Shown piece after piece: positions 1 through 64,000 of a stretch of DNA of 64,000 bases (its first letter is position 1; each line of letters starts with the position of its first letter). The stretch is from Hemiscyllium ocellatum. Lineage: Eukaryota. Location of the stretch: assembly GCF_020745735.1 (NCBI RefSeq), contig NC_083435.1:35818121-35882120 (forward strand), in the 5' to 3' direction. Below the pieces are notes generated by a model. It was not told the origin of the DNA. It saw only the letters and a list, made by a program, of their open reading frames with translations, and searched no databases. Position numbers and translations under genes: made by a program.

Positions 1-346
1 GGGATGGAGTTTTTACAGGGGGCAGGGTGGGAGGAGGTGTAGTCCAGGTAGCTGTGGGAGTCAGTCGGTTTATAGTAGATGTCTGTGTTGAGTCGGTCAC
101 CCGAGATAGAGATGGAAAGGTCTAGGAAGGGGAGGGAGGAGTCTGAGACAGTCCAGGTGAATTTGAGGTCGGGATGGAAGGTGTTAGTAAAGTTGATGAA
201 CTGTTCAACCTCCTCGTGGGAGCACGAGGCAGCGCTGATACAGTGATGAACGGTTCAACCTCCTCGTGGGAGCACGAGGCAGCGCCGATACAGTGATGAA
301 CTGTTCAACCTCCTCGTGGGAGGATGAACTGTTCAACTTCAACCTC
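1..346 (-). mobile_element. Penelope-like element, 5'-truncated end (RT C-terminal part), copy A
   Basis: Minus strand reads CSHEEVEQFINFTNTFHPDLKFTWTVSDSSLPFLDLSISISGDRLNTDIYYKPTDSHSYLDY. The end shows serial repeats at 195-346. Confidence 0.85.
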
Positions 347-639
347 TGTAATGTATCAGAGGTGCATGTAGATGCATTGCACAGCCTTCTCCTTGGAAGA
401 CCCATGATCACTGTATTGCAGTCTGTACTCAAACCTCATTGTTGTTTGGTGCAACCATTCAGGCATCACATGACTGAGAAGCTGTACTATTTCTAATATT
501 TCCCACATCGAATCATCACAACCATCCAGAAAGGGTCCAGCAATGAAGATACTAGTGTTTTTTTGGCATTGTCCAAAGACAGAACAGAAAAATTCAGGTG
601 CTAGAAAGCTAAGAGCGAGTCTCAGGCCAGAATAACATC

Positions 640-1076
640 CAGCAACTATCAAGAATGGCTAAACAGGTTTAACCTGTATCCATTCGGGTTTACTAGAATG
701 GGAGGTGATAGTATTGAAACATACCACATTTTGAGAGTGGGTAAATGTTCAGAAGGCATTTTCATTAATTGGGAATCTTGAACAAGGGGGCATAGTTACA
801 GAAAAATGAGACACTCATTTCGAATGGAGGTGGAAATGAATTTCTTCTCCCAGAGGATGGTGAATGTCTGGAATTCTCTATCCCAGAGATTTACAGAGGC
901 TAGAATACTGAAAACATTTAAAAAGTGGAGGGAGATAGGTTTTTGAAATAGTAGGTAGCTGAGGGTGATGAGGAGATGAGACCTGAGACAGATCAGCTAT
1001 GACCTTGTAAATGACAGGCCAGGCTGAAGAAGGGGCTAACTGCTTCCTGCTGCTCCGATTTCTCATATTCTCGTGA
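640..1076 (+). mobile_element. CR1-clade LINE 3' fragment (old)
   Basis: Decayed YQEWLNRFNLY..IETY..RGHSY..FFSQRMVNVWNSL ORF2 tail plus 3' UTR. Confidence 0.7.
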
Positions 1077-2222: not shown

Positions 2223-4230
2223 CATAAGACCATAAGACCATAAGACATAGGAGTGGAAGTAAGGCCATTTGGCCCATCGAGTCCACTCCGCCATTCAATC
2301 ATGGCTGATGGGCATTTCAACTCCCCTTACCCGCATTCTCCCTGTAGCCCTTAATTCCTCGTGACATCAAGAATCTATCAACCTCTGCCTTGAAGACATT
2401 TAGCGTCCCGGCCTCCATTGCACTCTGCGGCAATGAATTCCACAGGCCCACCACTCTCTGGCTGAAGAAATGTCTCCGCATTTCTGTTCTGAATTGACCC
2501 CCTCTAATTTTAAGGCTGTGTCCACGAGTCCAAGTCTCCTCTCCTAACGGAAACTATTTCCTAGCGTTCACCCTTTCCAAGCCATGTATTATCTTGTACG
2601 TTTCTATTAAGTCTCCCCTCAATCTTCTAAACTCCAATGAATACAATCCCAGGATCCTCAGCTGTTCCTCGTATGTTAGACCAACCATTCCAGGGATCAT
2701 CCGTGTGAATCTCCGCTGGACACGTTCCAGTGCCAGTATGTCCTTCCTGAGGTGTGGGGACCAAAACTGGACACAGTATTCCTAATGGAACCTAACCAGA
2801 GCTTTATAAAGTCTCCATAGCACAACAGTGCTTTTATATTCCAACCCTCTTGAGATATGTGACAACATTGCATTCGCTTTCTTAATCACGGACTCAACCT
2901 GCATGTTTACCTTTAAAGAATCCTTGACTAGTACTCCCAGATCCCTTTGTACTTTGGCTTTACGAATTTTCTCATCGTTTAGAAAGTAGTCTATGCTTTT
3001 ATTCTTTTTGCCAAAGTGCAAGACCTCGCATTTGCTCACGTTGAATTCCATCAGCCATTTCCTGGACCACTCTCCCAAACTGTCTAGATCCTTCTGCAGC
3101 CTCCCCACTTCCTCAGTACTACCTGCCTATCCACCTAACTTCGTATCATCGGCAAACATTGCTAGAATGTCCCTAGTCCCTTCATCCAAATCATTAATAT
3201 ATAATGTGAACAGCTGTGGCCCCAACATTGAACCCTGCAGGACACCGCTCGTCACCGGCTGCCATTCTGAAAAAGAAACTTTTATCCCAACTCTCTGCCT
3301 TCTGTCAGACAGCCAATCCTCAATCCATCCCAGTAGCTCACCTTGAACACCATGGGCCCTCACCTTGCTCAGCAGCCTCCCGTGTGGCACCTTATCAAAG
3401 GCCTTTTGGAAGTCTAGATAGACCACATCCACTGGGTTTCCCTGGTCTAACCCACTTGTCACCTCTTCAAAGAATTCCAACAGGTTTGTCAGGCATGACC
3501 TCCCCTTACTAAATCCATGTTGACTTGTTCTAATCAGACTCTGCTCTTCCAAGAATTTAGAAACCTCATCCTTAATGATGGATTCTAGAATTTTACCAAC
3601 AACCGAGGTTAAACTGATTGGCCTATAATTTTCCATCTTTTGTGTTGATCCTTTCTTGAACAAGAGGGTTACAACAGCAATCTTCCAATCATCCGGGACT
3701 TTCCCTGACTCCAGTGACTCTTGAAAGATGTCAATCAATGCCTCCACTATTTCCTCAGCCACCTCTCTCAGAACTCTAGGATGTATCCCATCGGGGCCAG
3801 GAGATTTATCAATTTTAAGACCTTTTAGCTTTTCTAGCACTTTCTCTTTTGTAACGGCAACCATACTCAACTCAGCCCCCTGACTCCCTTTAATTGTTGG
3901 GATATTACTCATGTCTTCCACTGTGAAAACTGACGCAAAGTACTTGTTAAGTTCTCCTGCTATTTCCTTATCTCCCATTACTAGGCTTCCAGCATCAGTT
4001 TGAAGTGGCCCAATGTCTACTTTTGCCTGTCGTTTGTTTCTTATGTATTGAAAGAAACTTTTACTATCATTTCTAATATTACTGGCTAGCCTACCTTCAT
4101 ATTTGATCCTCTCCTTTCTTATTTCTCTCTTTGTTATCCTCTGTTTGTTTTTGTAACCTTCCCAATCTTCTGATTTCCCACTGCTCTTGGCCACTTTATA
4201 GGATCTCTCTTTTTCTTTAATAGATTTCCA
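2223..4230 (-). mobile_element. CR1-clade LINE, 5'-truncated, relatively young; RT largely intact
   Basis: ORF 3127-4311 has [44 protein letters not shown] and FADD. The frame continues past stops at 3127 and 2782 to the end of ORF2. The 3' tail is (CATAAGAC)x3 on the + strand at 2223-2246. Confidence 0.95.
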
Positions 4231-4699
4231 TGACAATGCAAGAGCAGGAGAGGTGGTGAAATATCCCCAGTGAGGGAGTAAGAAACACAGAGGGCAGGTA
4301 GGGTTAGTCATTTAGGAGGATGAAGTGGGTGAGAGTCAGTGAGAGGTGATGCTATGAATAATGGTGACAGTTGTAAACCATGAGCCTTTTGAGCTTCCTG
4401 TGCAGTGATTATGGAGAAGCAGAGTGAAGGTGGTGACACTTACACCAGCAGCGTAAAGAATATCAGCAACTTTCTTCCAGCACTGCTGTGCCTTTATATG
4501 CTTGCACAAAGTGGAACTGACTTGGGTGACTGCATTAATCCAGGCTCCCTGGATCTGGGGGCAAGGCCTCCTTTATCAGTCAGCAGGATACATCACTGCC
4601 CTCCTCTCTACTGTCTAGTCCCCCAGCAAAGGATTCTGGGTAATCCAAGATGGAGGACAGGAAAGCTTTCTGGCTGTAAGAGCTGCTCCTTTTTGTGAA

Positions 4700-6624: not shown

Positions 6625-8128
6625 CAGTGTGGGGGTTAATGGGGTGGATCATCTACAGAGAGCCCAGTGTGGGGGTTAATGGGGTGGGTCATCTACAGAG
6701 AGCTCAGTGTGGGGGTTAATGGGGTGGGTCATCTACAGAGAGCTCAGTGTGAGGATTAATGGAGTGGGTCATCTACAGAGAGCCCAGTATGGTGGTTATT
6801 GGTTTGGGTCATGTACAGAGAGGCCAGTGTGGGGGTTAATGGGGTGGGTCATGTACAGGGAGCCCAGTGTGGGGGTTAATGGGGTGGGTCATGTACAGAG
6901 AGCCCAGAGTGAGGGTTAATGGAGAGGGTCATGTACAGAGAGCCCAGTGTGGGGATTAATGGAGTAGATTGTGTACAGAGAGCCCAGTGTGGGGATTAAT
7001 GGAGTAGATTATGTACAGAGAGCCCAGTGTGGGGATTAATGGAGTAGATTGTGTACAGAGAGCCCAGTGTGGGTGTTAATGGAGTAGATTGTGTACAGAG
7101 AGCCCAGTGTGGGGATTAATGGAGTAGATTGTGTACAGAGAGCCCAGTGTGGGGATTAATGGAGTAGATTGTGTACAGGGAGCCCAGTGTGGGGGTTAAT
7201 GGGGTGGGTCATGTACAGGGAGCCCAGTGTGGGGGTTAATGGAGAGGGTCATGTACAGAGAGCCCAGTGTGGGGATTAATGGAGTAGATTGTGTACAGAG
7301 AGCCCAGTGTGGGGATTAATGGAGTAGATTATGTACAGAGAGCCCAGTGTTGGGGTTAATGGAGTCGATTGTGTACAGAGAGCCCAGTGTTGGGGTTAAT
7401 GGAGTAGATTGTGTACAGAGAGCCCAGTGTGGGGGTTAATGGAGTAGACTGTGTACAGAGAGCCCAGTGTGGGGGTTAATGGGATGGGTCATGTACAGGG
7501 AGCCCAGTGTGGGGATTAATGGAGTAGATTGTGTACAGAGAGCCCAGTGTGGGTGTTAATGGAGTAGATTATGTACAGAGAGCCCAGTGTGGGGATTAAT
7601 GGAGTAGATTGTGTACAAAGAGCCCAGTGTGGGGATTAATGGAGTAGATTGTGTCCAGAGAGCCTAGTGTGGGTGTTAATGGAGTAGATTGTGTACAGAG
7701 AGCTCAGTGTGGGGGTTAATGGAGTAGATTGTGTACAGACAGCCCAGTGTGGGTGTTAATGGAGTAGATTGTGTACAGACAGCCCAGTGTGGGTGTTAAT
7801 GGAGTAGACTGTGTACAGAGAGCCCAGTGTGGGGGTTAATGGAGTAGACTGTGTACAGAGAGCCCAGTGTGGGGGTTAATGGAGTAGATTGTGTACAGAG
7901 AGCCCAGTGTGGGGGTTAATGGAGTAGATTGTGTACAGAGAGCCCAGTGTGGGGTTTAATGGAGTAGATTGTGTACAGAGAGCCCAGTGTGGGGGTTAAT
8001 GGAGTAGATTGTGTACAGAGAGCCTAGTGTGGGGTTTAATGGAGTAGATTGTGTACAGAGAGCCCAGTGTGGGGTTTAATGGAGTAGACTGTGTACAGAG
8101 AGCCCAGTGTGGGGGTTAATGGAGTGGG
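6625..8128. repeat. 40-bp minisatellite, about 37.5 units (AGCCCAGTGTGGGGGTTAATGGAGTAGATTGTGTACAGAG)
   Basis: Exact 40-bp register with no indels from 6661 to 8100 (36 units), plus partial end units. Confidence 0.98.
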
Positions 8129-9498: not shown

Positions 9499-10361
9499 TT
9501 TTGCAAGGTTTGTGAAGGTTTGTAGCTCAGGTTGAGGTTTAGGGTGTAGGTTTGCTCGCTGAGCTGTAGGTTTGATATCCTGACGTTTCAGTACCTGGCT
9601 ACGTAACATCATCAGTGGCGACCTCCAAGTGAAGCGAAGCTGTTGTCTCCTGCTTTCTATTTATATCTTTCTCCTGGATGGGGTTCCTGGGGTTTGTGGT
9701 GATGTCATTTCCTGTTCGTTTTCTGAGGAGTTGATAGGTGGTATCTAGATCTATGTGTTTGTTTATGGCGTTGTGGTTGGAGTGCCAGGCCTCCAGGAAT
9801 TCTCTGGGATGTCTTTGCTTAGCCCGTCCCAGAATAGATGTGTTGTCCCAGTCGAAATTGTGTTTTTTTTCATCCGTGTGTAGGGATACGAGGGAGAGAG
9901 GGTCATGTTATTTTGTGGCTAGCTGGTGTTCGTGTATCCTGCAGCACAGATGAACTTCAGAAAACAGAGGAGAACCATCTATACAACGTATTCAAGAAGA
10001 ACGGATACTCAAAAAATACAGTGCGCAGATTCCTCAGGAACAAACCACGACAAGCAGACCAAACACAGCCAGAAACCCTAACCACCTTACCTTACTTCAA
10101 AGAAATTTCAGAAATGACAGCCAGACTACTAAGACCCCTCGGAATCCTAGTAGCACACAAACCCACCAACACTCTCAAACAAAAACTAACAAACTTTAAA
10201 GACCCAATACAACCCATGGACAAAACCAATGCCATCTACAAAATTCCATGTAAGGACTGCCACAAACACTACGTAGGACAAACAGGAAGAAAGTTAGCCA
10301 CCAGGATACACGAACACCAGCTAGCCACAAAAAGACACATCCCTCTCTCCCTCATAGCCCT
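9499..10361. mobile_element. Penelope-like element (second family): inverted terminal part (9499-9941, -) joined to sense GIY-YIG body (9939-10361, +)
   Basis: + ORF: YKIPCKDCHKHYVGQTGRKLATRIHEHQLATK. The - part continues RIHEHQLATK*HDPLSLVSLHTDEKKHNFDWDNTSILG..REFLEAWHSNHNAINKHIDLD and carries a hammerhead-like core. Confidence 0.9.
9578..9619 (-). ncRNA. Minimal type I hammerhead ribozyme relic in a Penelope terminus (copy B 45203-45244)
   Basis: Minus strand CCA-CUGAUGA-U-GUUACGUAGCCAGGUACU-GAAAC-GUC-AGG. The core is intact, but helices I and II contain mismatches. Confidence 0.6.
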
Positions 10362-10594
10362 GCGAATCCAGCTCAGATTAGATTTAAGCTGCCACATCCA
10401 GTCCTGATGGCAGTGACTAATTCAGCAACTCACTGGCAGAGGAGACTGTACAAATATCCCATTGTCAATGCTGGGGGAGGCCAGCACATTAGCTGCTGCC
10501 TCCGATGCCTTTGTCAATGCTGGGCAGGCAATGAGTTTCCTTCCTTATTTTACACTTTGATAAGTTTGACTTTACTCATGAGACTATTCAGTGA

Positions 10595-15860: not shown

Positions 15861-16152
15861 TGGGGGAAATGAAAAAAAGGAGAAAAAGATAGTGCCAGCT
15901 TCGGTACAAGTATCGAGGTACAAATCTTGCACAGTGAATCAAAACAGTGCAGCTACACAGTAAAATGGAATGTAAGTGAGCGGTGAACAGTGAAGAAGCC
16001 CAGAATTATGAGAAATGACCATGAGAGCTGAAGTCCCAGTCCATGCCCACAGACTCCACAACACGAGTTCATGCTGCCTCCACGTGCCGGACTCCATCCA
16101 GGACTCACAGCAACGGCGCTCCAGGAATCGCCCATTCGCTCCACTCCGTGCC

Positions 16153-16870
16153 AGAACACAGCCCGTACTCACTCCATCCCGGGACACGGCCTGTGCTCAC
16201 TCCATCCCGGGACACGGCCCGTGCTCACTCCATCCCGGGACACGGCCCGTGCTCACTCCATCCCGGGACACGGCCTGTACTCACTCCATCCCGGGACACG
16301 GCTCGTGCTCACTCTGTCTTGGGACACAGCCCGTGCTCACTCCATCCCGGGACACGGCCTGTACTCACTCTGTCCCCGGGACACGGCCCATGCTCACTCT
16401 GTCCCCAGGACACGGCCCATACTCACTCCATCCCAGGACATGGCCCGTTCTCACTCTAGCCCTGGACACGGCCCGTGTTCACTCCATCTCGGGACACGGC
16501 CATTGCACACTCCCCCCCACCCCCGGGACATGGCCCATGCTCACTCCGCCCCGGGACACGGCCCGTGCTCACTCCGCCCCAGGACACGGCCCGTGCTCAC
16601 TCCGCCCCGGGACACGGCCCGTGCTCACTCCGCCCCGGGACACGGCCCGTGCTCACTCCGCCCCGGGACACGGCCCGTGCTCACTCCGCCCCGGGACACG
16701 GCCCGTGCTCACTCCGCCCTGGGACACGGCCCGTGCTCACTCCGCCCTGGGACACGGCCCGTGCTCACTCCGCCCCGGGACACGGCCCGTGCTCACTCCG
16801 CCCTGGGACACGGCCTGTGCTCACTGCACCCTGGGACACAGCCTGTGCTCACTCTGCCCCGGGATACGGC
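16153..16870. repeat. 28-bp GC/CpG-rich minisatellite, about 25 units (CACGGCCCGTGCTCACTCCGCCCCGGGA)
   Basis: 28-bp periodicity is visible. Left units carry CCATCCC and right units CCGCCCC. Confidence 0.97.
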
Positions 16871-16884
16871 CTGCCTGCTTTTTT

Positions 16885-17160
16885 TTGTGCGAAGGGGAGG
16901 GCAGGGACTAAATCAAAATAGAGTTGGAGGGGGAAACAATGCACTCCACTCCCTGCGGAGCCCACCTCTCCCTGCACAACTCCAGGGTGTTGGTGGACAC
17001 CACGTGCTCCTTCTTCAAGGACACCTGGGCTCGAACGTAACCATGGAAGAGGGGCAGGCAGTCGCCCCTGAAGACCTCCTCCACGCCCGCTGCCTGGACC
17101 TGTTTATGGCCAGTTTGGCCAGGCTCAGGAGCAGACCCACAAGGAGGTCCTCGCACCTGC
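16885..17160 (-). mobile_element. Tx1/L1-clade LINE ORF2 C-terminus (copy B 52511-52786)
   Basis: ORF 16908-17240 ends DCLPLFHGYVRAQVSLKKEHVVSTNTLELCRERWAPQGVECIVSPSNSILI*. Confidence 0.75.
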
Positions 17161-19129
17161 CCTACGGCCTGCCTGCTTCCTGCTTGAATCCATGATCTGA
17201 TTGGTGCCTGCTGCTCAGTGCAGAGGGCATCTCCCATCATGCTCTCTTGGTGACTGTGGGTGGGGTTTCATCAGCCACTTGGGGCCAATATTAGAATCTA
17301 TTGATCTCCTTGAGCAGAATTTATAAATCTTGGTCTTGGAACCCAGGGCCAGCACCCCACCTCCCAATACTCCTCACCTCTGAATGGTATTTAAATACAA
17401 ACATAAAGATTTCTGCTTTGATTGGTCTCACAGTGAATGAATATTTGCTTACATCCATGAACCCATGTTCTCAAGCACAGCAGGATCTGAAGTTGGGAAG
17501 TTGGGGGTCGGATAGGGGGTTTCAGGCGGTCATGGAGAATATTGCTGAACCAATGCACAGTCATCCAGAATGTGTCCCTGTTTTGTGCTGAACAGAGATT
17601 CCTGCTCTCATCCTTGTGTTCCCCATTTCTCTCTCACTACCTCATATTGTACAGCACAACTGTTAAATCAGCAAACAAGAACTTTCACTATTGCTTGGAA
17701 ATGATTCGGTATTCATTAAACCAAGCAGAACTTAAAGTTTTGCTGAATCTCTTTGGTCTGTTGTGGAAAATGAAACTCTACAATCGGCATTTCAGGAAAA
17801 CGGTTACCTTATGTTGGAAGAACAGAGTTAAAGTAAAATGTTTTGACACCTCATTGCTGAATCTCGGAGACAGCAGCAGCACTCCCTGGACAAGTTCAGA
17901 AGGTTACTATCTGCAAACAGGATCATCAAGTGTCCACAGTAATTATTCCTTTCTTGCATCTGATCACAGTGTTTTTCCACATCCCAATACCAGTTAACGT
18001 GAGACTTTCAGTCACTGAAACAATCAGAGACTGACTACAATTCCCACCGAGGATGAGAGTCTGACCAGTGTTTCTGTTTTCTACCAGATACAATTATTAC
18101 AGGAGCTGAGATCTCAGTGACAACCCTGGTCCATCCAGTCCGGATAGTGATTCTCCCACAGCTGAATCACAGACAGCTCAGTGAAACAGACTGCTGTTTG
18201 TAAGTGATGGTTATGGGGATGATCTTCTACATTATTCTGAGACAGTGAGAGGGTGGCTGAATGTGATAAAAATCAGTGTAACAGTTTGAGATACCATTCA
18301 AGTGTTTGTGAAATATTTGTGGAAAAGTGTATAACTGTAAAGCATATATTATGCTTCAATGGATATGTGCTTGAGACAATCCGAAGTGAAAGCCAGTAAA
18401 ACAGGAAAATGAGATATATCCATTGGATTCATCTTTTATACCTCCAGGTATGACCAGTTCATTTCCAGGTATGTAACTGTTGTTCCTCTCTCTGAGTTAT
18501 TCTGGTTATTTAGTAACATCAGCTTCTGAGTTGGGGGTTGCTCCTGCGTTGTGATGTATTAAACATGTTGAATCAGTACATTGCACTTCTCTGACAAATG
18601 TGACTGAGAGACTTCAGTTTTCTACTAACACTGTATCTGTTCTTCTTCAACACCTTTAGTCTGCTCCTGAGCAGAATGCCATCTTTTTGCAATTGTTGAA
18701 TTTTCAACATTCTTCAATGTTGGCATTGTTATTCTGTCTGAATGTTCATTTCTGTGAAACGACCATGAATCAGGAACGACTGACAGTTTTCCTGTTTTAT
18801 ACCAAGTGCTGTTGCTCCAGGAGGTGAGATCTTAGTGAAATCACTGCGTCTCTCCACCTACTACAGTGATTTCCCACAGAGCTGGAACTTCATGTATGGA
18901 TGAGTAGAATAATTTCATCTCAAGGGATCCTGTTGAAAGGGAGTATAACTGTCTGAGTATGAAGGTTCCTGGTGTATTATTGTGAGACAGCAAGAGTGTA
19001 TGTGAGTGTGACAGTTGTGTGAGTATATCTCATTAAGTGTGTATGTATGTGTGTGAGACAATGTTTTTGGAAATGTAAATGACATTATATTGTACTTCCA
19101 TGTGCGCAAACTTTCCTATAAAAGTCAGG

Positions 19130-27920: not shown

Positions 27921-27933
27921 NNNNNNNNNNNNN
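27921..27933. other. Assembly gap, exactly 13 N
   Basis: A run of 13 n cuts a Penelope RT region that continues uninterrupted in copy B (63553 onward). Confidence 0.99.
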
Positions 27934-27959
27934 TTTACTCAATCTCATTCCAACTTCTC

Positions 27960-28330
27960 CTTTACAATAGCTTGAGAGACAGCAATATCTCATCTTTCTA
28001 TTTGCAACCTTCCAGACTCAACATCAAATTCAACAATTTTACTTCCAAATTGCCGACACCATTGTTTTTGGGTGATGTGTTTTGGCGATGTTTCTGTGAT
28101 TCCTATCAATATGCCATTGAAATACACCTTTACATGTCCCACTGCTATTTCCTCCTGCCTTGCTCTCACCATCACTTCACCATTTCGCCTTCCGCTCTCT
28201 GCCGTCTTCTTTCTGCATTGCCTCCTGTTCTTATCGCACCACCGCATTTTTCCCTGCGCTCCACAAACATAGAATCTGCAACATTTTTGGCCTTTTCCCA
28301 GTTCTGATCAAAGTTCACAGAACTGAAACG
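27960..28330 (+). mobile_element. Highly decayed Penelope 3' fragment
   Basis: ..LQPSRLNIKFNNF.. remnant and a CUGAUCA..GAAAC hammerhead relic at about 28303-28330. Confidence 0.4.
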
Positions 28331-28579
28331 TTTTGATTTTGTGAAAGTGCGATCCATTGGATGTGATCGACACTGACAGAATGCCGCAGTTCCGTTTGTC
28401 GCCAGGAGGTGGCAGCCCTGTACCATCAGCGTCACCTGCGGGATAATGTTTTGCTTGCAGTACCAGACACCACCAGCAGGTGGACATATTGCACCGACTG
28501 GGACAAAACTGTTCAGATCCATTCAATGTGACAGGAGGCACAGAGGGGAAAATTGTCTAGAAATACCGCACCTTAAAAT

Positions 28580-29000: not shown

Positions 29001-29156
29001 TTGGATGATGTTTTGATCTCTGCCCTTGGCTTCCTGCCCATAAATTCTGTTTCCTGTGCTTCCCTCTCACTCCACCTGACCAAGGGCTGATGCTCCAAAC
29101 ACCAGTGATTCCGAAGGAACCGATTGGACTCTAACCTGGTGTCATGGGAATTCTGA

Positions 29157-37848: not shown

Positions 37849-39855
37849 CATAAGACCATAAGACCATAAGACATAGGAGTGGAAGTAAGGCCATTTGGCC
37901 CATCGAGTCCACTCCGCCATTCAATCATGGCTGATGGGCATTTCAACTCCCCTTACCCGCATTCTCCCTGTAGCCCTTAATTCCTCGTGACATCAAGAAT
38001 CTATCAACCTCTGCCTTGAAGACATTTAGCGTCCCGGCCTCCATTGCACTCTGCGGCAATGAATTCCACAGGCCCACCACTCTCTGGCTGAAGAAATGTC
38101 TCCGCATTTCTGTTCTGAATTGACCCCCTCTAATTTTAAGGCTGTGTCCACGAGTCCAAGTCTCCTCTCCTAACGGAAACTATTTCCTAGCGTTCACCCT
38201 TTCCAAGCCATGTATTATCTTGTACGTTTCTATTAAGTCTCCCCTCAATCTTCTAAACTCCAATGAATACAATCCCAGGATCCTCAGCTGTTCCTCGTAT
38301 GTTAGACCAACCATTCCAGGGATCATCCGTGTGAATCTCCGCTGGACACGTTCCAGTGCCAGTATGTCCTTCCTGAGGTGTGGGGACCAAAACTGGACAC
38401 AGTATTCCTAATGGAACCTAACCAGAGCTTTATAAAGTCTCCATAGCACAACAGTGCTTTTATATTCCAACCCTCTTGAGATATGTGACAACATTGCATT
38501 CGCTTTCTTAATCACGGACTCAACCTGCATGTTTACCTTTAAAGAATCCTTGACTAGTACTCCCAGATCCCTTTGTACTTTGGCTTTACGAATTTTCTCA
38601 TCGTTTAGAAAGTAGTCTATGCTTTATTCTTTTTGCCAAAGTGCAAGACCTCGCATTTGCTCACGTTGAATTCCATCAGCCATTTCCTGGACCACTCTCC
38701 CAAACTGTCTAGATCCTTCTGCAGCCTCCCCACTTCCTCAGTACTACCTGCCTATCCACCTAACTTCGTATCATCGGCAAACATCGCTAGAATGTCCCTA
38801 GTCCCTTCATCCAAATCATTAATATATAATGTGAACAGCTGTGGCCCCAACATTGAACCCTGCAGGACACCGCTCGTCACCGGCTGCCATTCTGAAAAAG
38901 AAACTTTTATCCCAACTCTCTGCCTTCTGTCAGACAGCCAATCCTCAATCCATCCCAGTAGCTCACCTTGAACACCATGGGCCCTCACCTTGCTCAGCAG
39001 CCTCCCGTGTGGCACCTTATCAAAGGCCTTTTGGAAGTCTAGATAGACCACATCCACTGGGTTTCCCTGGTCTAACCCACTTGTCACCTCTTCAAAGAAT
39101 TCCAACAGGTTTGTCAGGCATGACCTCCCCTTACTAAATCCATGTTGACTTGTTCTAATCAGACTCTGCTCTTCCAAGAATTTAGAAACCTCATCCTTAA
39201 TGATGGATTCTAGAATTTTACCAACAACCGAGGTTAAACTGATTGGCCTATAATTTTCCATCTTTTGTGTTGATCCTTTCTTGAACAAGAGGGTTACAAC
39301 AGCAATCTTCCAATCATCCGGGACTTTCCCTGACTCCAGTGACTCTTGAAAGATGTCAATCAATGCCTCCACTATTTCCTCAGCCACCTCTCTCAGAACT
39401 CTAGGATGTATCCCATCGGGGCCAGGAGATTTATCAATTTTAAGACCTTTTAGCTTTTCTAGCACTTTCTCTTTTGTAACGGCAACCATACTCAACTCAG
39501 CCCCCTGACTCCCTTTAATTGTTGGGATATTACTCATGTCTTCCACTGTGAAAACTGACGCAAAGTACTTGTTAAGTTCTCCTGCTATTTCCTTATCTCC
39601 CATTACTAGGCTTCCAGCATCAGTTTGAAGTGGCCCAATGTCTACTTTTGCCTGTCGTTTGTTTCTTATGTATTGAAAGAAACTTTTACTATCATTTCTA
39701 ATATTACTGGCTAGCCTACCTTCATATTTGATCCTCTCCTTTCTTATTTCTCTCTTTGTTATCCTCTGTTTGTTTTTGTAACCTTCCCAATCTTCTGATT
39801 TCCCACTGCTCTTGGCCACTTTATAGGATCTCTCTTTTTCTTTAATAGATTTCCA
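37849..39855 (-). mobile_element. CR1-clade LINE, copy B
   Basis: Duplicate of 2223-4230, with an extra 1-nt deletion in a T-run near 38622. Confidence 0.95.
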
Positions 39856-42249
39856 TGACAATGCAAGAGCAGGAGAGGTGGTGAAATATCCCCAGTGAGG
39901 GAGTAAGAAACACAGAGGGCAGGTAGGGTTAGTCATTTAGGAGGATGAAGTGGGTGAGAGTCAGTGAGAGGTGATGCTATGAATAATGGTGACAGTTGTA
40001 AACCATGAGCCTTTTGAGCTTCCTGTGCAGTGATTATGGAGAAGCAGAGTGAAGGTGGTGACACTTACACCAGCAGCGTAAAGAATATCAGCAACTTTCT
40101 TCCAGCACTGCTGTGCCTTTATATGCTTGCACAAAGTGGAACTGACTTGGGTGACTGCATTAATCCAGGCTCCCTGGATCTGGGGGCAAGGCCTCCTTTA
40201 TCAGTCAGCAGGATACATCACTGCCCTCCTCTCTACTGTCTAGTCCCCCAGCAAAGGATTCTGGGTAATCCAAGATGGAGGACAGGAAAGCTTTCTGGCT
40301 GTAAGAGCTGCTCCTTTTTGTGAAGTATTTTAGGTGCTGGAGGTGATTTTCTCGAATTCCAGGAGCAGCAATTACTGTTTTATTTGCTGTTGCATTGTTT
40401 TGGAACTTTGGGGGGAAAAAAAGTCAAAACAACAGCAGTTTTTAAAGGGAGAAGAACAGACAAAGGAAGCACATGGTGAGGACATTGCAGGGGGGAGAGA
40501 GAGAGAGAGAGAGAGAACCTGCACAGTACTGCCTTTGCTGAATTTGAATTCATGTGTCGCTGGATATCGGAGTGCGTCTGGGAAAATTAACAAACAGTGA
40601 ATTTCACAACTAAACTTGGAGCAACCTGTTAGCTGCCAGAGGATGTGGTGGAGGCTGGTACAATTGCAACACTTAAGAGGCATTTGAATGGGTATATGAA
40701 TAGGAAGGGTTTGGAGGAATATGGGCCGGGTGCTGGTAGGTGGGACTAGATTGGGTTGGGCTATCTGGTCGGCATGGATGGGTTGGACCGAAGGGTCTGT
40801 TTCTGTGCAGTACATCTCTATGACTCCATGACTCTCTAACTCCAGGTCCCTGTCAATGAAGCTTCACATCCTCATTGGAGCAGAACAGTGAGAGGGCAGT
40901 CTCAGGCTTCGAGGTTTTGAAGTGTTGGGGAACTGGATGTTAAACATGACTCCAGCATCGAAGCAACTCAAGGCCCCTGTGCAGTGGTAATTATCTCCGG
41001 TAAGATCCGAAAGCCCAAAAGGACATCTAACTGTTAATTAATGAACAGCAAAGCATAGAATTGTACAACACAAGTCACCATGGGTCATGGTGGGAAATTC
41101 ATCAAGAAACCTCCGGAAATCTACACACAGCTTCAAAAGGAGAAGCTTCAGCCCCGTAACCTGTTATTGATCATCTCCACTTCCTTATCTCTGAGGTATT
41201 TAATTTAGAGATCCCCATCTCTTTTCATATTTGCTCCTGGATTCATATCGTCCATTCTGTAACACGGGAGAGTATTGATCTCCCCCCTTTATGTATGAAT
41301 GGACACTGAGACCCCGTGAGATGACAGAATTCCCCAACAATTCTCCTGGAGGATCACAACCACCTGACTGGATTCTTACTTGCACAATCTCAAATCTGTC
41401 CCCAGGGGAGCTGGTGGTAACATGGTACTGTCACGAGATTTGTAATCCTGAGGTTTAGGTTAATGTTCAGGGGACACATGTTCAACTTAACCAAAGCAGC
41501 TGGTGGAATTTAAACTGCAAGAATAAATCTGGATTCTGAAGCTAATCTTGGTTGTGGTGACCATAGCAATTTTCATTGTTTTAAAAACCTATCTTTTCAG
41601 AAAGGAAATGGCCATCCACACCCAGAGTAGCCAAAATATGATTCCTGACTGACCTTCTTAATGGTCCTTAAACTATCCAGTTGGAATAGTCAGGGATGGA
41701 GAGCAAATGCTGCCTTATATGTATAATGTCTAAAGAGATGTAAATCTCCTGATCTTCATTCCCAGTGATCATTATTCTGAAAGATTGAACATAGTTATTG
41801 GTAAGGATAAGGCTGGTCCTCAGGTGAAAGGGCGAAACTGGGTAAAGGATAATTCCAAACGGATTTGGCAGGAATTGGAGAAATTAGATTGCGGGGGACT
41901 GTTTGATGGTCAATCCACATCTGACATGTGGGAAGACTTTTTAAGGCCAGTTGATCAGAATTCAGGACCAGCCTGTTCCTGTGAGGATGAAAAATAAGGA
42001 TGACGAGATTTGGGAATCCTGGATGATAAGAAATATTGAAAGATTAGTTAAAAATGAGAAGCAAAGTATGTTACGTTTAAGAAACTGAAATCAGACAAAG
42101 CAATTGAGAAGATAAAGGAAGTAAAGAAGTATTTAAATAAGGAATTAAGAGCAATAAAATGGGCCATGAGGTGTCCTTGGCAATCAGGATTTAGGAAAAT
42201 CCCAAAGCATTTTATACATATATTAGAAAGTGAGCAACTACGGAAAGGG

Positions 42250-43753
42250 CAGTGTGGGGGTTAATGGGGTGGATCATCTACAGAGAGCCCAGTGTGGGGG
42301 TTAATGGGGTGGGTCATCTACAGAGAGCTCAGTGTGGGGGTTAATGGGGTGGGTCATCTACAGAGAGCTCAGTGTGAGGATTAATGGAGTGGGTCATCTA
42401 CAGAGAGCCCAGTATGGTGGTTATTGGTTTGGGTCATGTACAGAGAGGCCAGTGTGGGGGTTAATGGGGTGGGTCATGTACAGGGAGCCCAGTGTGGGGG
42501 TTAATGGGGTGGGTCATGTACAGAGAGCCCAGAGTGAGGGTTAATGGAGAGGGTCATGTACAGAGAGCCCAGTGTGGGGATTAATGGAGTAGATTGTGTA
42601 CAGAGAGCCCAGTGTGGGGATTAATGGAGTAGATTATGTACAGAGAGCCCAGTGTGGGGATTAATGGAGTAGATTGTGTACAGAGAGCCCAGTGTGGGTG
42701 TTAATGGAGTAGATTGTGTACAGAGAGCCCAGTGTGGGGATTAATGGAGTAGATTGTGTACAGAGAGCCCAGTGTGGGGATTAATGGAGTAGATTGTGTA
42801 CAGGGAGCCCAGTGTGGGGGTTAATGGGGTGGGTCATGTACAGGGAGCCCAGTGTGGGGGTTAATGGAGAGGGTCATGTACAGAGAGCCCAGTGTGGGGA
42901 TTAATGGAGTAGATTGTGTACAGAGAGCCCAGTGTGGGGATTAATGGAGTAGATTATGTACAGAGAGCCCAGTGTTGGGGTTAATGGAGTCGATTGTGTA
43001 CAGAGAGCCCAGTGTTGGGGTTAATGGAGTAGATTGTGTACAGAGAGCCCAGTGTGGGGGTTAATGGAGTAGAGTGTGTACAGAGAGCCCAGTGTGGGGG
43101 TTAATGGGATGGGTCATGTACAGGGAGCCCAGTGTGGGGATTAATGGAGTAGATTGTGTACAGAGAGCCCAGTGTGGGTGTTAATGGAGTAGATTATGTA
43201 CAGAGAGCCCAGTGTGGGGATTAATGGAGTAGATTGTGTACAGAGAGCCCAGTGTGGGGATTAATGGAGTAGATTGTGTACAGAGAGCCTAGTGTGGGTG
43301 TTAATGGAGTAGATTGTGTACAGAGAGCTCAGTGTGGGGGTTAATGGAGTAGATTGTGTACAGACAGCCCAGTGTGGGTGTTAATGGAGTAGATTGTGTA
43401 CAGAGAGCCCAGTGTGGGTGTTAATGGAGTAGACTGTGTACAGAGAGCCCAGTGTGGGGGTTAATGGAGTAGACTGTGTACAGAGAGCCCAGTGTGGGGG
43501 TTAATGGAGTAGATTGTGTACAGAGAGCCCAGTGTGGGGGTTAATGGAGTAGATTGTGTACAGAGAGCCCAGTGTGGGGTTTAATGGAGTAGATTGTGTA
43601 CAGAGAGCCCAGTGTGGGGGTTAATGGAGTAGATTGTGTACAGAGAGCCTAGTGTGGGGTTTAATGGAGTAGATTGTGTACAGAGAGCCCAGTGTGGGGT
43701 TTAATGGAGTAGACTGTGTACAGAGAGCCCAGTGTGGGGGTTAATGGAGTGGG
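42250..43753. repeat. 40-bp minisatellite, copy B
   Basis: Same unit count as copy A, with a few substitutions. Confidence 0.98.
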
Positions 43754-51439: not shown

Positions 51440-51778
51440 ATGGGTGCTGGGGGGCGTACAGGCTCTACCGCTGTTCGGCGGTGGGGTGGGGGAAATGAAA
51501 AAAAGGAGAAAAAGATAGTGCCAGCTTCGGTACAAGTATCGAGGTACAAATCTTGCACAGTGAATCAAAACAGTGCAGCTACACAGTAAAATGGAATGTA
51601 AGTGAGCGGTGAACAGTGAAGAAGCCCAGAATTATGAGAAATGACCATGAGAGCTGAAGTCCCAGTCCATGCCCACAGACTCCACAACACGAGTTCATGC
51701 TGCCTCCACGTGCCGGACTCCATCCAGGACTCACAGCAACGGCGCTCCAGGAATCGCCCATTCGCTCCACTCCGTGCC

Positions 51779-52496
51779 AGAACACAGCCCGTACTCACTC
51801 CATCCCGGGACACGGCCTGTGCTCACTCCATCCCGGGACACGGCCCGTGCTCACTCCATCCCGGGACACGGCCCGTGCTCACTCCATCCCGGGACACGGC
51901 CTGTACTCACTCCATCCCGGGACACGGCTCGTGCTCACTCTGTCTTGGGACACAGCCCGTGCTCACTCCATCCCGGGACACGGCCTGTACTCACTCTGTC
52001 CCCGGGACACGGCCCATGCTCACTCTGTCCCCAGGACACGGCCCATACTCACTCCATCCCAGGACATGGCCCGTTCTCACTCTAGCCCTGGACACGGCCC
52101 GTGTTCACTCCATCTCGGGACACGGCCATTGCACACTCCCCCCCACCCCCGGGACATGGCCCATGCTCACTCCGCCCCGGGACACGGCCCGTGCTCACTC
52201 CGCCCCAGGACACGGCCCGTGCTCACTCCGCCCCGGGACACGGCCCGTGCTCACTCCGCCCCGGGACACGGCCCGTGCTCACTCCGCCCCGGGACACGGC
52301 CCGTGCTCACTCCGCCCCGGGACACGGCCCGTGCTCACTCCGCCCTGGGACACGGCCCGTGCTCACTCCGCCCTGGGACACGGCCCGTGCTCACTCCGCC
52401 CCGGGACACGGCCCGTGCTCACTCCGCCCTGGGACACGGCCTGTGCTCACTGCACCCTGGGACACAGCCTGTGCTCACTCTGCCCCGGGATACGGC
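51779..52496. repeat. 28-bp minisatellite, copy B
   Basis: Duplicate of 16153-16870. Confidence 0.97.
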
Positions 52497-55400
52497 CTGC
52501 CTGCTTTTTTTTGTGCGAAGGGGAGGGCAGGGACTAAATCAAAATAGAGTTGGAGGGGGAAACAATGCACTCCACTCCCTGCGGAGCCCACCTCTCCCTG
52601 CACAACTCCAGGGTGTTGGTGGACACCACGTGCTCCTTCTTCAAGGACACCTGGGCTCGAACGTAACCATGGAAGAGGGGCAGGCAGTCGCCCCTGAAGA
52701 CCTCCTCCACGCCCGCTGCCTGGACCTGTTTATGGCCAGTTTGGCCAGGCTCAGGAGCAGACCCACAAGGAGGTCCTCGCACCTGCCCTACGGCCTGCCT
52801 GCTTCCTGCTTGAATCCATGATCTGATTGGTGCCTGCTGCTCAGTGCAGAGGGCATCTCCCATCATGCTCTCTTGGTGACTGTGGGTGGGGTTTCATCAG
52901 CCACTTGGGGCCAATATTAGAATCTATTGATCTCCTTGAGCAGAATTTATAAATCTTGGTCTTGGAACCCAGGGCCAGCACCCCACCTCCCAATACTCCT
53001 CACCTCTGAATGGTATTTAAATACAAACATAAAGATTTCTGCTTTGATTGGTCTCACAGTGAATGAATATTTGCTTACATCCATGAACCCATGTTCTCAA
53101 GCACAGCAGGATCTGAAGTTGGGAAGTTGGGGGTCGGATAGGGGGTTTCAGGCGGTCATGGAGAATATTGCTGAACCAATGCACAGTCATCCAGAATGTG
53201 TCCCTGTTTTGTGCTGAACAGAGATTCCTGCTCTCATCCTTGTGTTCCCCATTTCTCTCTCACTACCTCATATTGTACAGCACAACTGTTAAATCAGCAA
53301 ACAAGAACTTTCACTATTGCTTGGAAATGATTCGGTATTCATTAAACCAAGCAGAACTTAAAGTTTTGCTGAATCTCTTTGGTCTGTTGTGGAAAATGAA
53401 ACTCTACAATCGGCATTTCAGGAAAACGGTTACCTTATGTTGGAAGAACAGAGTTAAAGTAAAATGTTTTGACACCTCATTGCTGAATCTCGGAGACAGC
53501 AGCAGCACTCCCTGGACAAGTTCAGAAGGTTACTATCTGCAAACAGGATCATCAAGTGTCCACAGTAATTATTCCTTTCTTGCATCTGATCACAGTGTTT
53601 TTCCACATCCCAATACCAGTTAACGTGAGACTTTCAGTCACTGAAACAATCAGAGACTGACTACAATTCCCACCGAGGATGAGAGTCTGACCAGTGTTTC
53701 TGTTTTCTACCAGATACAATTATTACAGGAGCTGAGATCTCAGTGACAACCCTGGTCCATCCAGTCCGGATAGTGATTCTCCCACAGCTGAATCACAGAC
53801 AGCTCAGTGAAACAGACTGCTGTTTGTAAGTGATGGTTATGGGGATGATCTTCTACATTATTCTGAGACAGTGAGAGGGTGGCTGAATGTGATAAAAATC
53901 AGTGTAACAGTTTGAGATACCATTCAAGTGTTTGTGAAATATTTGTGGAAAAGTGTATAACTGTAAAGCATATATTATGCTTCAATGGATATGTGCTTGA
54001 GACAATCCGAAGTGAAAGCCAGTAAAACAGGAAAATGAGATATATCCATTGGATTCATCTTTTATACCTCCAGGTATGACCAGTTCATTTCCAGGTATGT
54101 AACTGTTGTTCCTCTCTCTGAGTTATTCTGGTTATTTAGTAACATCAGCTTCTGAGTTGGGGGTTGCTCCTGCGTTGTGATGTATTAAACATGTTGAATC
54201 AGTACATTGCACTTCTCTGACAAATGTGACTGAGAGACTTCAGTTTTCTACTAACACTGTATCTGTTCTTCTTCAACACCTTTAGTCTGCTCCTGAGCAG
54301 AATGCCATCTTTTTGCAATTGTTGAATTTTCAACATTCTTCAATGTTGGCATTGTTATTCTGTCTGAATGTTCATTTCTGTGAAACGACCATGAATCAGG
54401 AACGACTGACAGTTTTCCTGTTTTATACCAAGTGCTGTTGCTCCAGGAGGTGAGATCTTAGTGAAATCACTGCGTCTCTCCACCTACTACAGTGATTTCC
54501 CACAGAGCTGGAACTTCATGTATGGATGAGTAGAATAATTTCATCTCAAGGGATCCTGTTGAAAGGGAGTATAACTGTCTGAGTATGAAGGTTCCTGGTG
54601 TATTATTGTGAGACAGCAAGAGTGTATGTGAGTGTGACAGTTGTGTGAGTATATCTCATTAAGTGTGTATGTATGTGTGTGAGACAATGTTTTTGGAAAT
54701 GTAAATGACATTATATTGTACTTCCATGTGCGCAAACTTTCCTATAAAAGTCAGGAAGTTATGTTGTCATCAGAAAGGACACTGGTGTAACCACATCTGC
54801 AGCTCTGGGTACAGTATTGGTCTTTCACGGAGGATGTAAAGGCATTGGAAAGAGTTCAGAGAAGGTTTACCAGACTAATACCTGGATTGGTCGGGTGACC
54901 TGATGACGAAAGGTTGGACAGGCTATGTCTGTATCTGCCGGAGTTGATATCTGCCTGTCAAGGCAACCTGATTGAAACAGATTCGATCCAGCGGGATCTT
55001 GACAGATTGATTTGGAGGCGGTGTTTTCTCTGAAGGGAGAATTGAGAAGGAGGGATGACTCCTTAAAGTGAGGGGGACGTTCATTGAAATCAAAGACCAG
55101 GTACATTTCTTTTTGTCTTGAAGGGTTCGTGAGGAACTGGAACTCTCTCACTGAAATGGCAGTGGAAACAACCCCTTGTGTATTTGTGAGTTGAAGGCAG
55201 AAGGATTCTTAGGGATAGAGAAAATTTTCCAACTTTTCCATGAAAAGCTGCAGAGAAGGAGGTGACAATGACCTGGTGCTGAGTTTCTGAGTGAGCACAC
55301 ACACAGAAATACAGCAGCATCCTGAAGCTCAGTGACAGAGTGTGGAGTGATTCAGATTAAAGGGGGTGGGATTGAGCAGTTTCCTGCCTGTTGTGTATAA

Positions 55401-60282: not shown

Positions 60283-62427
60283 TGAAATAACTTCACAGAG
60301 GCTGGTACTCTGTCACTGAGTCACCCTTTATTTACTTGTGTGCAGTTCTCTGGCTGAGACCAGCCAGTTCGGGGCCAGTCCCATGAACCAATGAGACTCT
60401 GATTCTCCTATTTATATTTGTTTGTTTTTGGTTATCCCCACATTACTACAATACAATAGTGTTACTTGTTCTCCCCCACAGCACCTGGGTTGTGTGTGTG
60501 TGTAAGTGCACGGCCTCAGTGAAAATCCCATTGTGCAAATAACTTTACTCAATATTTCTACCACCAGGAAAAATACCCACGTGGCCAAAGAACCAGAAAC
60601 AAGCAAGACCCAAAAGGGGTGATGCTTACATGAAAATCACGGTGAAGCGGGAGGGTGGGGATTAAATGAAATTAGAATTGGAGAGCAATCCACAGACCCA
60701 AAGTGCCTATCTCTAATTCCCCGTGTTTATATTTTTCTTCAAGGTATGATGTTGGAAATGCTTATTCCAATTCCAAGATGGTTGTTGCAAGCAAATGTTC
60801 TTTAGGCACATCCTGTCTTCTCCCCTCACCACTGAAATAACTGCACGAAAGCTGGTATCCCAACACCAAGGCCCCCTTTATGTATTTGGGCGCAGTACAC
60901 TGGCTGTGGCGAGCTAGCTCAGGTTCAGCTCCCTGCACTGAGGAGATTTTAATCCTCTGATTTTATACATACATATTTGATATATATATAAAATGTTAAT
61001 ACTCCTACACTACTGCAGTAAGGCTTATATTCCCCAGCACCAGTGTTTGTGTCTGTGTGCAGGTGTAAGACACGGTCAAAAAGGCCAAGTGTAAATAACT
61101 TTATTCACACTGTGCCACCAGGAAAGACCCCCGTGTGGCGAGTGGCCAGGGAGAAACACAGCCCGGAGTGAGCATTGCTCACGTGAGAAAGGTGAACAGG
61201 AGGGAACGGGCTAAATCAAAACCGAGTTGGAGAGGGAAATAAAGCACCCCATCCCCTCCCCACGGTGCCCACCTCTAATCCCCAGTTTATATATTCATTC
61301 TTTCCTTTTTTAGCTCAAAGAAACAAAACAGAAACAAAAAAAAAAGGAAGGCAATGTCTCAGACCAAGAGGAATTTTCCACAGAGGGCACTGGCTGCGGC
61401 CGACCAACTCACAGTCAGTCCCCGGAACTGAGGAGATTCTCATCTCCTGGTTTTATATATTGGTGGGCGGCACGGTGGCACAGTGGTTAGCACTGCTGCC
61501 TCACAGTGCCTGAAACCCGGGTTCAATTCCCGACTCAGGCGACTGACTGTGTGGAGTTTGCACGATCTCCCCGTGTCTGCGTGGGTTTCCTCCGGGTGCT
61601 CCGGTTTCCTCCCACAGTCCAAAGATGTGCGGGTCAGGTGAATTGGCCATGCTAAATTGCCCGTAGTGTTAGGTAAGGGGTAAATGTAGGGGTATGGGTG
61701 GGTTGCGCTTTGACGGATCGGTGTGGACTTGTTGGGCCGAAGGGCCTGTTTCCACACTGTAAGTAATCTAATCTAATATTCACGTGTATGGATATTCTTT
61801 ATTTCTGTTCTTCCACACAGAGAAGAAACATCAAGTGCAAAAAAACTTCATTCATATTCCACCACAGGAAGACCAAAGCACCCACGTGGCCAGTGATAAG
61901 CAGAGCCCTTCTCATCAAAGGGAGGGCAGGGATTAAATCAAAATAGAGTTGGAGGGAGAAATAAAGCACTCCACGCCCTGGGGTGCCCACCTCTCCCTCA
62001 CACCCTCGGGGGTGTTGGGTTGACACTGCGTGCTCCTTCTTCAGGGATACCTGGGCCCAAACAGTCCCCTGGTGAATATTTTCTTTATTGAGGAGTTTCT
62101 AAATCTCCTGGTTATATATTTTTAATTCATCCCCCCCACACAGACACACCCACGTTACCACCTAACAGCAGTAGTGCTTATATTTTTCCCCAGACCCCAT
62201 CTGGTGTGTGTGCAGGTGTCGAACACAGTGAAGAACAATAAGTGTGTAAACCATTATTTATATTTCACCACCAGGAAGAATGGAAACACCAGGGTGGCCA
62301 GTGACAAGCAGTGTCCTTTTCAGAGGGCGTTGCTGCGTGATCAAAAAGGTGAAGGGGAGGGCAGAGATTAAATCAAAACAGAGTTAGAGGGGGAAATAAT
62401 GCCCTCCACTCCCTGTGACGCCCACCC
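60283..62427 (-). repeat. Four-module LTR/Tx1 array, copy B
   Basis: Duplicate of 24652-26795. Confidence 0.65.
61465..61777 (+). mobile_element. HE1-type SINE, copy B
   Basis: Duplicate of 25834-26146. Confidence 0.9.
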
Positions 62428-64000
62428 GAGGAAACTGGTGAAGTCCACATTGATGCCGGGTGATTGGAAGGTCCCAAGGTGGAAGATGAGGTGTTCTTCC
62501 TCCAGGCGTCGGATGGTTGGAGGGTGGTGATGGAGGAGATCCAGGATTTGCATGTCCTTGACGGAGTGGGAGGGAGAATTGAAGTATTCAGCCACAGGGT
62601 GGTGGGGTTGGTTGGTGTGGGTGTCCCAGAGATGTTCTCTAAAGGGCTCTGCAAGTCGGCGTCCTGTCCCCCCAATGTAGAGAAGACCTCATTGATCTTT
62701 TTATTTCAAACTGCCGCCTTGATCACCTTAACCTGTCTACCACCCCTCCCCCCACTCCAACCTCTCACCCTCGCAACACATAGCCCTCCACTCCCTCCGT
62801 TCCAACCTCAACTTCACCATCAAACCAGCGGATAAAGGGAGTGCAGTGGTAGTTTGGCACACTGACCTCTACACCGCTGAAGCCAGGCGCCAATTCGAAG
62901 ACACCTCCTCCTACTGCCCCCTTGACCATGAACTCACCTCCCAACACCAAACCATCATCTGCCAGACCATACACTACCTCATCACCTCAGAGGACCTCTC
63001 ACCCACAGTTTCCAACACCAAGGTTCGGGAACCCTGCACTTCATGGTTCTGTCTCCTACCCAAGATCCACAAGCCTGACTACCCTGGCCAACCTATCATC
63101 TCGGCCTGCTCCTGTTCCACCAAACTAGCCTCCACCAACCTTGATACTGTCCTATCCCCCCGGTCCAGAAACTCCCCACATACATTCGGGACACCACCCA
63201 TGCCCTCTGCCTCTTCCAGGACATTCATTTCCCTGGTCCCCAGTGCCTCATCTTCACCATGGACAGCCAGTCCCTATACACCTCCATCTGCTATGACCAA
63301 GCCCTCCGTTCTTCCTCTCCCAGTGTCCCCACCAGGACCACTTCACTGACACTCACATTTGTTTGACTGAACTAGTCCTCACTCTCAAGAATTTCTCCTT
63401 CGAATCCTCCCAGTTCCTCCAGATGAAAGGTGTAGCCATGGGCAGCCGCATGCGCCCCAGCTATGCTGGTCTCTTTGTTTATGTGGAATAGTCTATCTTC
63501 CACAGTTCCACTGGCACCGCTCCCAACGTTTCCCTCCGCTACATTGATGGCTGCATTGGTGCCACCTTGTGTTCCCATGAGGGGGTTGAACAGTTCATCA
63601 ACTTCACCAACACACTCCATTCGACCTGAAGTTCACCAGGACCATCACAGACACCTCCCTCCTCTTTTTGGATCTCTCCATCTCCATCAACAGTGACTGA
63701 CTCAACATAGACATTTTCTACAAACCCACTGGCTCCCACCTCTACCTGGACTACACCACCTCCCACCCTACTTCCTGTAAAAATTGCTATCCTGTATTCC
63801 CAATTCCTTCGCCTCCGCTGCATCTGCTCCCAGGAGAATCAGTTCCACCACAGAACACACCAGATGGCCTCCTTCTTCAATGACAACAATTTCCCCTCCC
63901 ACGTGGTTGATGATGCCCTCCGGCCCCCTTCCTGTACCTCTGACCTCCAACTGGAACAAGGATAGAACCCCCGATCCTCACCTTCCATCCCGTACACATC
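62428..64000. mobile_element. Same Penelope-like element, copy B, continuing to the window end
   Basis: The RT continues through ..RYIDGCIG..EQFINFTN..LDYTTSHP... Confidence 0.88.

Follow-up and report, generated by a model that had tools for sequence, protein, structure and literature searches.

The locus raises the question of whether a block of DNA that stands twice in the assembly is also present twice in the genome. Within the window (the whole stretch of 64,000 nucleotides that was analysed), two near-identical copies of the block lie on either side of an assembly gap. The pair is very probably an assembly artefact, that is, a false duplication by unmerged contig overlap, and the genome would then hold one copy.

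Extent and content of the repeated block

Main parts of the window, with positions counted from its first base:

1–27920: copy A, as much of the tail of contig 1 as the window shows; its left side is cut by the window edge, its right end is the gap
27921–27933: assembly gap between contig 1 and contig 2, exactly 13 N, the sole run of N in the window
27934–35626: head of contig 2, 7.7 kb, with an apparently decayed class I gene and a minus-strand Penelope-like element
35627–63553: copy B, which pairs with copy A and lies inside contig 2
63554–64000, plus strand: sequence beyond the stop of copy A, in which a Penelope-like reverse-transcriptase (RT) frame runs on (RYIDG-CIGA...)

When 1–27920 was compared with 27934–64000 by BLAST, copy A and copy B were joined in a single HSP of 27,931 columns at 99.903% identity, with 12 mismatches and 9 gap openings; the differences fill 21 rows when listed, or make up 20 events (8–9 indels) when the complex 6-bp indel at 24270 is taken as one. 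The match is colinear, with an offset of 35,626 bp between the copies, and reaches the last base before the gap. It is already under way at base 1, where the window edge cuts copy A, so the repeat is at least 27.9 kb long. The first-pass annotation had equated 1–27920 with 35627–63553 with roughly 20 differences; both the coordinates and the number of differences (20–21 by BLAST, at the identity given above) hold, but its 27.9 kb is a minimum and not the total length of the match.

For the middle part (27934–35626), no long match was found elsewhere in the window, only repeat-family matches at 67–88%. Under the overlap reading, the 35,626-bp offset predicts that this part is repeated in the 7.7 kb left of the window. 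A different account takes the copies (~28 kb) as a dispersed duplication or a complex misassembly, for example a haplotig set in the wrong place or the inserted head of contig 2, around a truly unique spacer of 7.7 kb at 27934–35626, and the lack of a second copy of this spacer inside the window agrees with it. Against this, the match starts at base 1 and so extends leftward, as a boundary would coincide with the window edge by chance in about 1 case in 64,000, and the simple overlap model accounts for all observations with no extra events; we find the dispersed or complex account hardly credible.

The class I locus (31311–33375) lies inside the middle 7.7 kb and outside the visible repeated part. 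It contains the following piece:

32616–33065, minus strand: remnant of a class I alpha-3 (C1-set) exon; Pfam C1-set, E 2e-10, profile positions 2–52 of 86, after which the frame is lost

Because this exon matches just the first 52 of the 86 C1-set positions, the class I gene looks, from its sequence, like a pseudogene. The earlier warning that the class I locus may be double-counted is kept in a refined form: the locus itself is in the middle 7.7 kb, and a second copy, if any, would be left of the window.

Minisatellites and retroelements in and beside the copies:

6625–8125, in copy B 42250–43750: 40-bp minisatellite, 37.5 units in either copy (repeat analysis)
16142–16871, in copy B 51768–52497: 28-bp G+C-rich minisatellite, 25.8 units, identical in the two copies (repeat analysis)
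3127–4311, minus strand, second copy at 38752–39936: retroelement RT ORF of 394 aa; Pfam RVT_1, E 2e-25
34745–35880, minus strand: Penelope-like fragment (linker and GIY-YIG nuclease); Pfam GIY-YIG, E 5.6e-5; inverted with respect to the element that ends the copies

Both minisatellites keep their unit number between the copies (37.5/37.5 and 25.8/25.8), as had been remarked earlier. The 28-bp minisatellite also yields long spurious ORFs that belong to no Pfam family.

Independent contigs encoding the 394-aa RT ORF are not on record, and none of the ten ORFs adjoining 27934 and 63553 was found in the protein cluster collection. The end of copy A falls within an RT-like frame (GVAMGS...YAGLF...RYIDG), which copy B carries past 63553. 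In Pfam scans that left out the ORF at 25812–26141, the RT pieces beside the break had no match. The segment 63565–63921 is 81% identical to 35855–35499 (minus strand), just upstream of the GIY-YIG ORF, and this ORF (345 aa) falls among clusters with HTH_animal, GIY-YIG and RVT_1 in the ESM Atlas (score 0.96). The label Penelope-like is derived from the sister copy, through the 81% match and the ESM Atlas clusters of the GIY-YIG ORF, and from motifs recognised by eye. An element first described as a Penelope element in which copy A stops, and which continues in copy B, was found again here, with the RT frame crossing 63553 and the name reached via the sister copy.

The gap, the scaffolding and the contig end

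The exact size of the gap, given in the first-pass annotation, was confirmed (27921–27933, with no second run of N in the window). The further statement that Bionano writes 13 N for overlapping unmerged contigs is borne out by the BiSCoT paper: for contigs that share labels, the output of the scaffolder is contig 1, 13 N and contig 2, with the shared region duplicated, and one human assembly held 515 such 13-N regions with a mean of 47 kb, 499 of the 515 being mergeable (PMC7649008). The assembly of the species was made with the VGP pipeline 1.6 trio (TrioCanu 2.1, purge_dups, scaff10x, Bionano Solve 3.6.1 and Salsa2) from PacBio CLR reads, the library of which was >20 kb with a mean of 54 kb, and it also went through manual curation (PMC10587355). 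The gap separates the duplicated pair on one scaffold, a configuration that serves as a VGP criterion for false duplication (PMC9516828).

Label sites available to the optical map:

5047, 8135 and 8474, again at 40672, 43760 and 44099: DLE-1 label sites (CTTAAG), common to both copies

The sites are present in each copy, so an overlap could show up on the optical map. The pair may have arisen as follows: TrioCanu, run on PacBio CLR reads, would have left two contigs with ends overlapping by about one long read; purge_dups would have left the overlap untrimmed; and Bionano Solve, having placed both contigs on the optical map and detected the overlap, would by design have written contig 1, 13 N and contig 2. 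In that case a single locus would underlie both the end of contig 1 and the initial ~35.6 kb of contig 2, and an overlap of up to 35.6 kb fits the CLR read length (>20 kb library, mean 54 kb).

A gap of 13 N would also be written when abutting contigs have an estimated gap slightly below zero. The pair could be a true tandem segmental duplication of very young age whose unit measures ~35.6 kb: being longer than most reads, the unit would have defeated the assembler, the contigs would have broken where the copies meet, and the near-zero gap estimated from the optical map would have been entered as 13 N. We give this reading a small chance. With a 35.6-kb unit and ~25x CLR per haplotype, few spanning reads and a contig break would indeed be expected. 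That the repeat outlasted purge_dups and manual curation is likewise a point for the duplication and against the artefact. A real tandem copy, on the other hand, requires both contig ends to meet the copy junction within the resolution of the optical map with no overlap between them, and in overlap-layout assemblers a contig ends where a read ends and not at a branch point; the overlap model is favoured because it needs no such coincidence. The base rate also speaks against a real duplication: in the assembly on which BiSCoT was tested, nearly every 13-N overlap proved to be a mergeable artefact (PMC7649008).

The sequences that would meet at a tandem junction point the same way. Within the window, 63554–64000 matched only inverted Penelope-like fragments and did not resemble the sequence from 27934 on, and the contig ends showed neither overlap nor homology across the gap, at a scale above a microhomology of a few bases. 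No homology that could have mediated unequal crossing-over was found between these two stretches, which weighs against the tandem duplication; unequal crossing-over between direct repeats was rejected as an origin on this ground. Two further points against it are the position of the break, inside the catalytic motif of a retroelement, and the massing of error-like changes at the end of contig 1:

27870–27893, plus strand: terminal cluster peculiar to copy A, made up of a 1-bp indel, a substitution and a 2-bp indel

Where 0.037 differences would be expected, the final 51 bp of contig 1 hold 3 (P(≥3) = 7.9e-6), and at the cluster the RT frame is intact in copy B and frameshifted in copy A. This fits consensus errors at a raw, thinly supported contig end. 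Outside the last 51 bp, no gradient of differences toward the contig end was found (mean position 15.2 kb against 14.0 expected, ~0.7 SD).

An unmerged overlap was the reading proposed in the first-pass annotation, and it is supported here by the gap size, the pipeline, the DLE-1 sites, the terminal cluster and the absent homology at the junction; the caveat attached to it, a very recent true duplication, still stands.

Nature of the differences between the copies

Error-like states specific to copy A are a 1-bp loss in a (CA)n run and two G-runs that are one base shorter; the homopolymer and microsatellite indels are probably consensus errors. The 40-bp minisatellite carries 4 of the 12 substitutions, and at 3 of these 4 sites copy B agrees with the consensus of the array, and copy A shows a rare base that departs from it, present in one or two units. 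A poorer consensus quality of copy A, judged by the terminal cluster and its larger share of error-like states, is suggestive only.

Outside the minisatellite and the contig end, 5 of the 7 substitutions are transitions, two at CpG (P = 0.045 against random errors). This pattern suggests real variants and two distinct molecules, alleles or paralogues, and its resemblance to real mutations is a point for the tandem duplication. Under the overlap reading, the ~20 differences would be a mixture of consensus errors, which would be certain at the extreme end of contig 1, and, possibly, real heterozygous sites that were fixed differently during polishing.

The substitution divergence between copy A and copy B is 0.025–0.043%, that is, 5–8 times below the mean nucleotide diversity (π) of the species, 0.2% (PMC10587355); even between two alleles such a value would be small, and it suits a single haplotype entered twice. 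If the copies were paralogues, they would have separated ~0.18–0.31 million generations ago at the mutation rate of the species, 7e-10 per site per generation (PMC10587355), a plausible time that favours the tandem duplication. Were the duplication real, to which we give little credit, it would be less than ~0.3 million generations old and lack flanking homology, with its junction in a Penelope-like element and each unit carrying a decayed class I gene. The use of microsatellite stability as a clock was dropped, as merely 13 short arrays were available, which is too few.

To return to the preferred reading, an unmerged overlap may be of two kinds. We lean towards the same paternal haplotype written twice (homotype); an overlap of two haplotypes (heterotype) is possible, if rather unlikely. 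In the sequencing runs of organism A, the share of 34 words sampled from copy A at 26535–26925 (3 variant sites) was 0.59–0.79, and 0.59–0.73 within the sample S1; these shares were taken from contigs, which drop one allele at bubbles, and they spread as widely within a sample as between samples.

Consequences and comparison with known systems

The contents of 1–27920 and 35627–63553 are probably counted twice, with no gain of a gene or repeat to claim; the same is probable for 27934–35626, with its class I remnant, and for the twin predicted to the left of the window. Such double counting would affect gene-family and pseudogene counts in the class I region of the shark, censuses of repeats and minisatellites, and claims of recent segmental duplication, as well as mappability and variant calling, since reads are split between the copies. 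The value of the observation is that of an assembly quality flag, not of biology; a real duplication would offer a snapshot of the growth of a class I multigene region.

Young tandem segmental duplications in MHC-linked multigene regions resemble the present pair in their large unit and an identity above 99.9%. Unlike them, the pair has neither junction sequence nor flanking direct repeats, and its supposed junction is placed exactly in an assembly gap.

The homotype false duplications at contig boundaries described for VGP assemblies (Rhie et al. 2021, PMC8081667; Ko et al. 2022, PMC9516828) are alike in that a gap lies between the members of the pair on the same scaffold, the length is about that of one long read, and the copies seem to differ in consensus quality. 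The VGP definition uses depth at or below the haploid level and the lack of single-copy k-mers.

With the 13-N overlaps of Bionano scaffolding (PMC7649008), which are described as usually allelic, the pair differs in that the assembly was trio-binned and the divergence is 5–8 times below π, and a double entry of one haplotype is here no less likely than an allelic overlap. It shares with them a gap of exactly 13 N, a tail of contig 1 that is repeated in contig 2 over tens of kb (mean 47 kb in their case; 27.9 of a predicted 35.6 kb visible in ours), label sites common to both contigs and an assembly made with Bionano Solve.

Extent of the repeat and differences between the copies

The sole N run in the window lies at 27921–27933. 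On comparison by BLAST of the sequence left of this gap with that right of it, copy A (1–27920, the visible tail of contig 1) and copy B (35627–63553, in the interior of contig 2) were aligned as one colinear block, 99.903% identical over 27,931 columns (12 mismatches, 9 gap openings). Because the match starts at window base 1 and is cut by the window edge, 27.9 kb is the minimum duplicated length; the 35,626-bp offset sets an upper limit of about 35.6 kb, at which the duplication would extend to the start of contig 2 (27934). The first-pass annotation had described this near-identical repeat with about 20 differences, a gap of exactly 13 N, and equal unit numbers of both large minisatellites in the two copies; these were borne out, respectively, by the BLAST block and difference listing, by the single N run, and by Tandem Repeats Finder (40 bp × 37.5 and 28 bp × 25.8 in A and B). 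The best reading, and a highly probable one, is that two contigs overlapping by up to 35.6 kb were left unmerged, so that the locus was falsely duplicated.

Four of the 12 substitutions fall inside the 40-bp minisatellite (6625–8125 in A, 42250–43750 in B) and one within the final 33 bp of copy A. Among the 8–9 indel events, two sit at the extreme end of copy A and one is a complex 6-bp indel; the others affect a T-run, one (CA)n and one (CT)n run, and two G-runs. Substitution divergence is 0.043%, falling to 0.025% when the minisatellite and contig end are left out; H. ocellatum has a mean nucleotide diversity of 0.2% (PMC10587355), and two alleles this similar at a non-recombining locus are computed to occur only about 12–19% of the time. 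Low divergence thus favours one haplotype written twice, the more likely form of the overlap, and is still compatible with two haplotypes. In a word search of runs stored as contigs with the copy-A version of 26535–26925, shares were 0.59–0.79, with a spread as wide inside one sample as from sample to sample.

Sequence content and the element at the break

No intact host gene was found in the window. The following features were recorded.

3127–4311, minus strand: reverse-transcriptase ORF, 394 aa (RVT_1, E 2e-25)
9838–10407: Penelope-like fragment, GIY-YIG signature (weak)
32616–33065, minus strand: class I alpha-3 exon in the 7.7 kb between gap and copy B, matching only the first 52 of 86 C1-set positions, after which the frame is lost
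34745–35200, minus strand: Penelope-like fragment, GIY-YIG nuclease signature (E 5.6e-5)
34846–35880: 345-aa ORF, grouping with HTH_animal + GIY-YIG + RVT_1 clusters (score 0.96)

The class I locus (31311–33375 in the first-pass annotation) looks like a pseudogene from its sequence, because the alpha-3 exon loses its reading frame, as would be expected from a frameshift. The G+C-rich 28-bp minisatellite (local GC about 0.57) gives rise to overlapping ORFs of 298 and 374 aa, each starting with ATG, at 16015–17195 (+) and 51641–52821 (+); no Pfam family was matched by these ORFs, and gene finders that work from ORFs will probably be misled by them. At 29157–29409, in the 7.7-kb part, lies a tandem repeat of 6.3 units (period 40 bp, or 119 bp) with no relation to the 40-bp minisatellite found in both copies.

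Copy A ends within a reverse-transcriptase-like frame (GVAMGS...YAGLF...RYIDG), and copy B continues the same frame; its continuation (63565–63921, +) is 81% identical to an inverted Penelope-like fragment at 35499–35855 (−). The earlier claim that copy A stops inside a Penelope element continuing in copy B therefore holds, although the reverse-transcriptase pieces beside the break were not recognised by Pfam. Copy B is flanked by these two inverted fragments of one family, about 27.7 kb apart, and a further fragment of that family lies at 10–229 (−). If the locus is single-copy, the fragments bracketing copy B are one inverted pair. Within the inverted Penelope-like fragment is a tandem repeat with a 50-bp unit (194–322 and 35820–35948; 2.6 units, 96% matches); each unit has an inverted CTCGTG/CACGAG pair, which gives a cluster of BssSI sites.

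Contig overlap or tandem duplication

The final 51 bp of contig 1 carry three of the approximately 20 differences, against an expectation of 0.037 (P = 7.9e-6). Because the retroelement frame from GVAMGS to RYIDG is kept across these sites in copy B and shifted in copy A, the terminal states of copy A are derived, and they resemble consensus errors where a contig ends on thin support. Elsewhere, one base is lost from a (CA)n run and two G-runs are one base shorter in copy A; at three of the four minisatellite substitutions (7449, 7618, 7655, 7780; in B 43074, 43243, 43280, 43405; array 1.5 kb) A has a rare non-consensus base and B the unit consensus. These states look error-like too, and the minisatellite substitutions may stem from polishing trouble in tandem repeats, not mutation.

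Transitions account for five of the seven "clean" substitutions (those outside the 40-bp minisatellite and contig end), with two at CpG (P = 0.045 if errors were random), so some differences may be real variants. Under a contig overlap these could be heterozygous sites settled differently in A and B, possibly through polishing of noisy reads of both haplotypes against three near-identical targets. They are also readable as paralogous mutations of a real, young tandem duplication, which we consider improbable; at 7e-10 per site per generation, its copies would be 0.18–0.31 million generations apart. A 13-N gap is written, too, between adjoining contigs whose estimated separation is a little less than zero, which would accommodate such a duplication. 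No likeness was found between the sequence after the gap and that following copy B, nor any overlap between the end of contig 1 and the start of contig 2; a tandem copy would require each contig to end where one unit meets the next, to the precision of the optical map and with no overlap between them. An overlap of the contigs predicts this geometry without coincidence. Such an overlap could be registered by optical map, since DLE-1 sites are common to both copies (5047, 8135, 8474 and 40672, 43760, 44099). Other layouts are very unlikely.

Assembly history and comparison with known artefacts

The assembly was made by trio binning with TrioCanu 2.1 from PacBio CLR reads (50x in total, from a library with a mean of 54 kb, size-selected above 20 kb), followed by Arrow polishing, purge_dups, scaff10x, Bionano Solve 3.6.1, and Salsa2; in the last polishing round the two haplotype assemblies were treated jointly (PMC10587355). 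That purge_dups and curation left the overlap in place speaks for a real duplication. The finding is ordinary, and its only use is as a warning against double counting. For contigs with labels in common, the Bionano scaffolder writes one after the other around 13 N, and the shared region is thereby duplicated (PMC7649008). In one human assembly, 515 duplicated 13-N regions (mean 47 kb) were counted, 499 of them mergeable (PMC7649008). One hallmark of false duplication according to Ko et al. is a gap between a duplicated pair on the same scaffold (PMC9516828); here, likewise, copies A and B lie on one scaffold with the 13-N gap between them.
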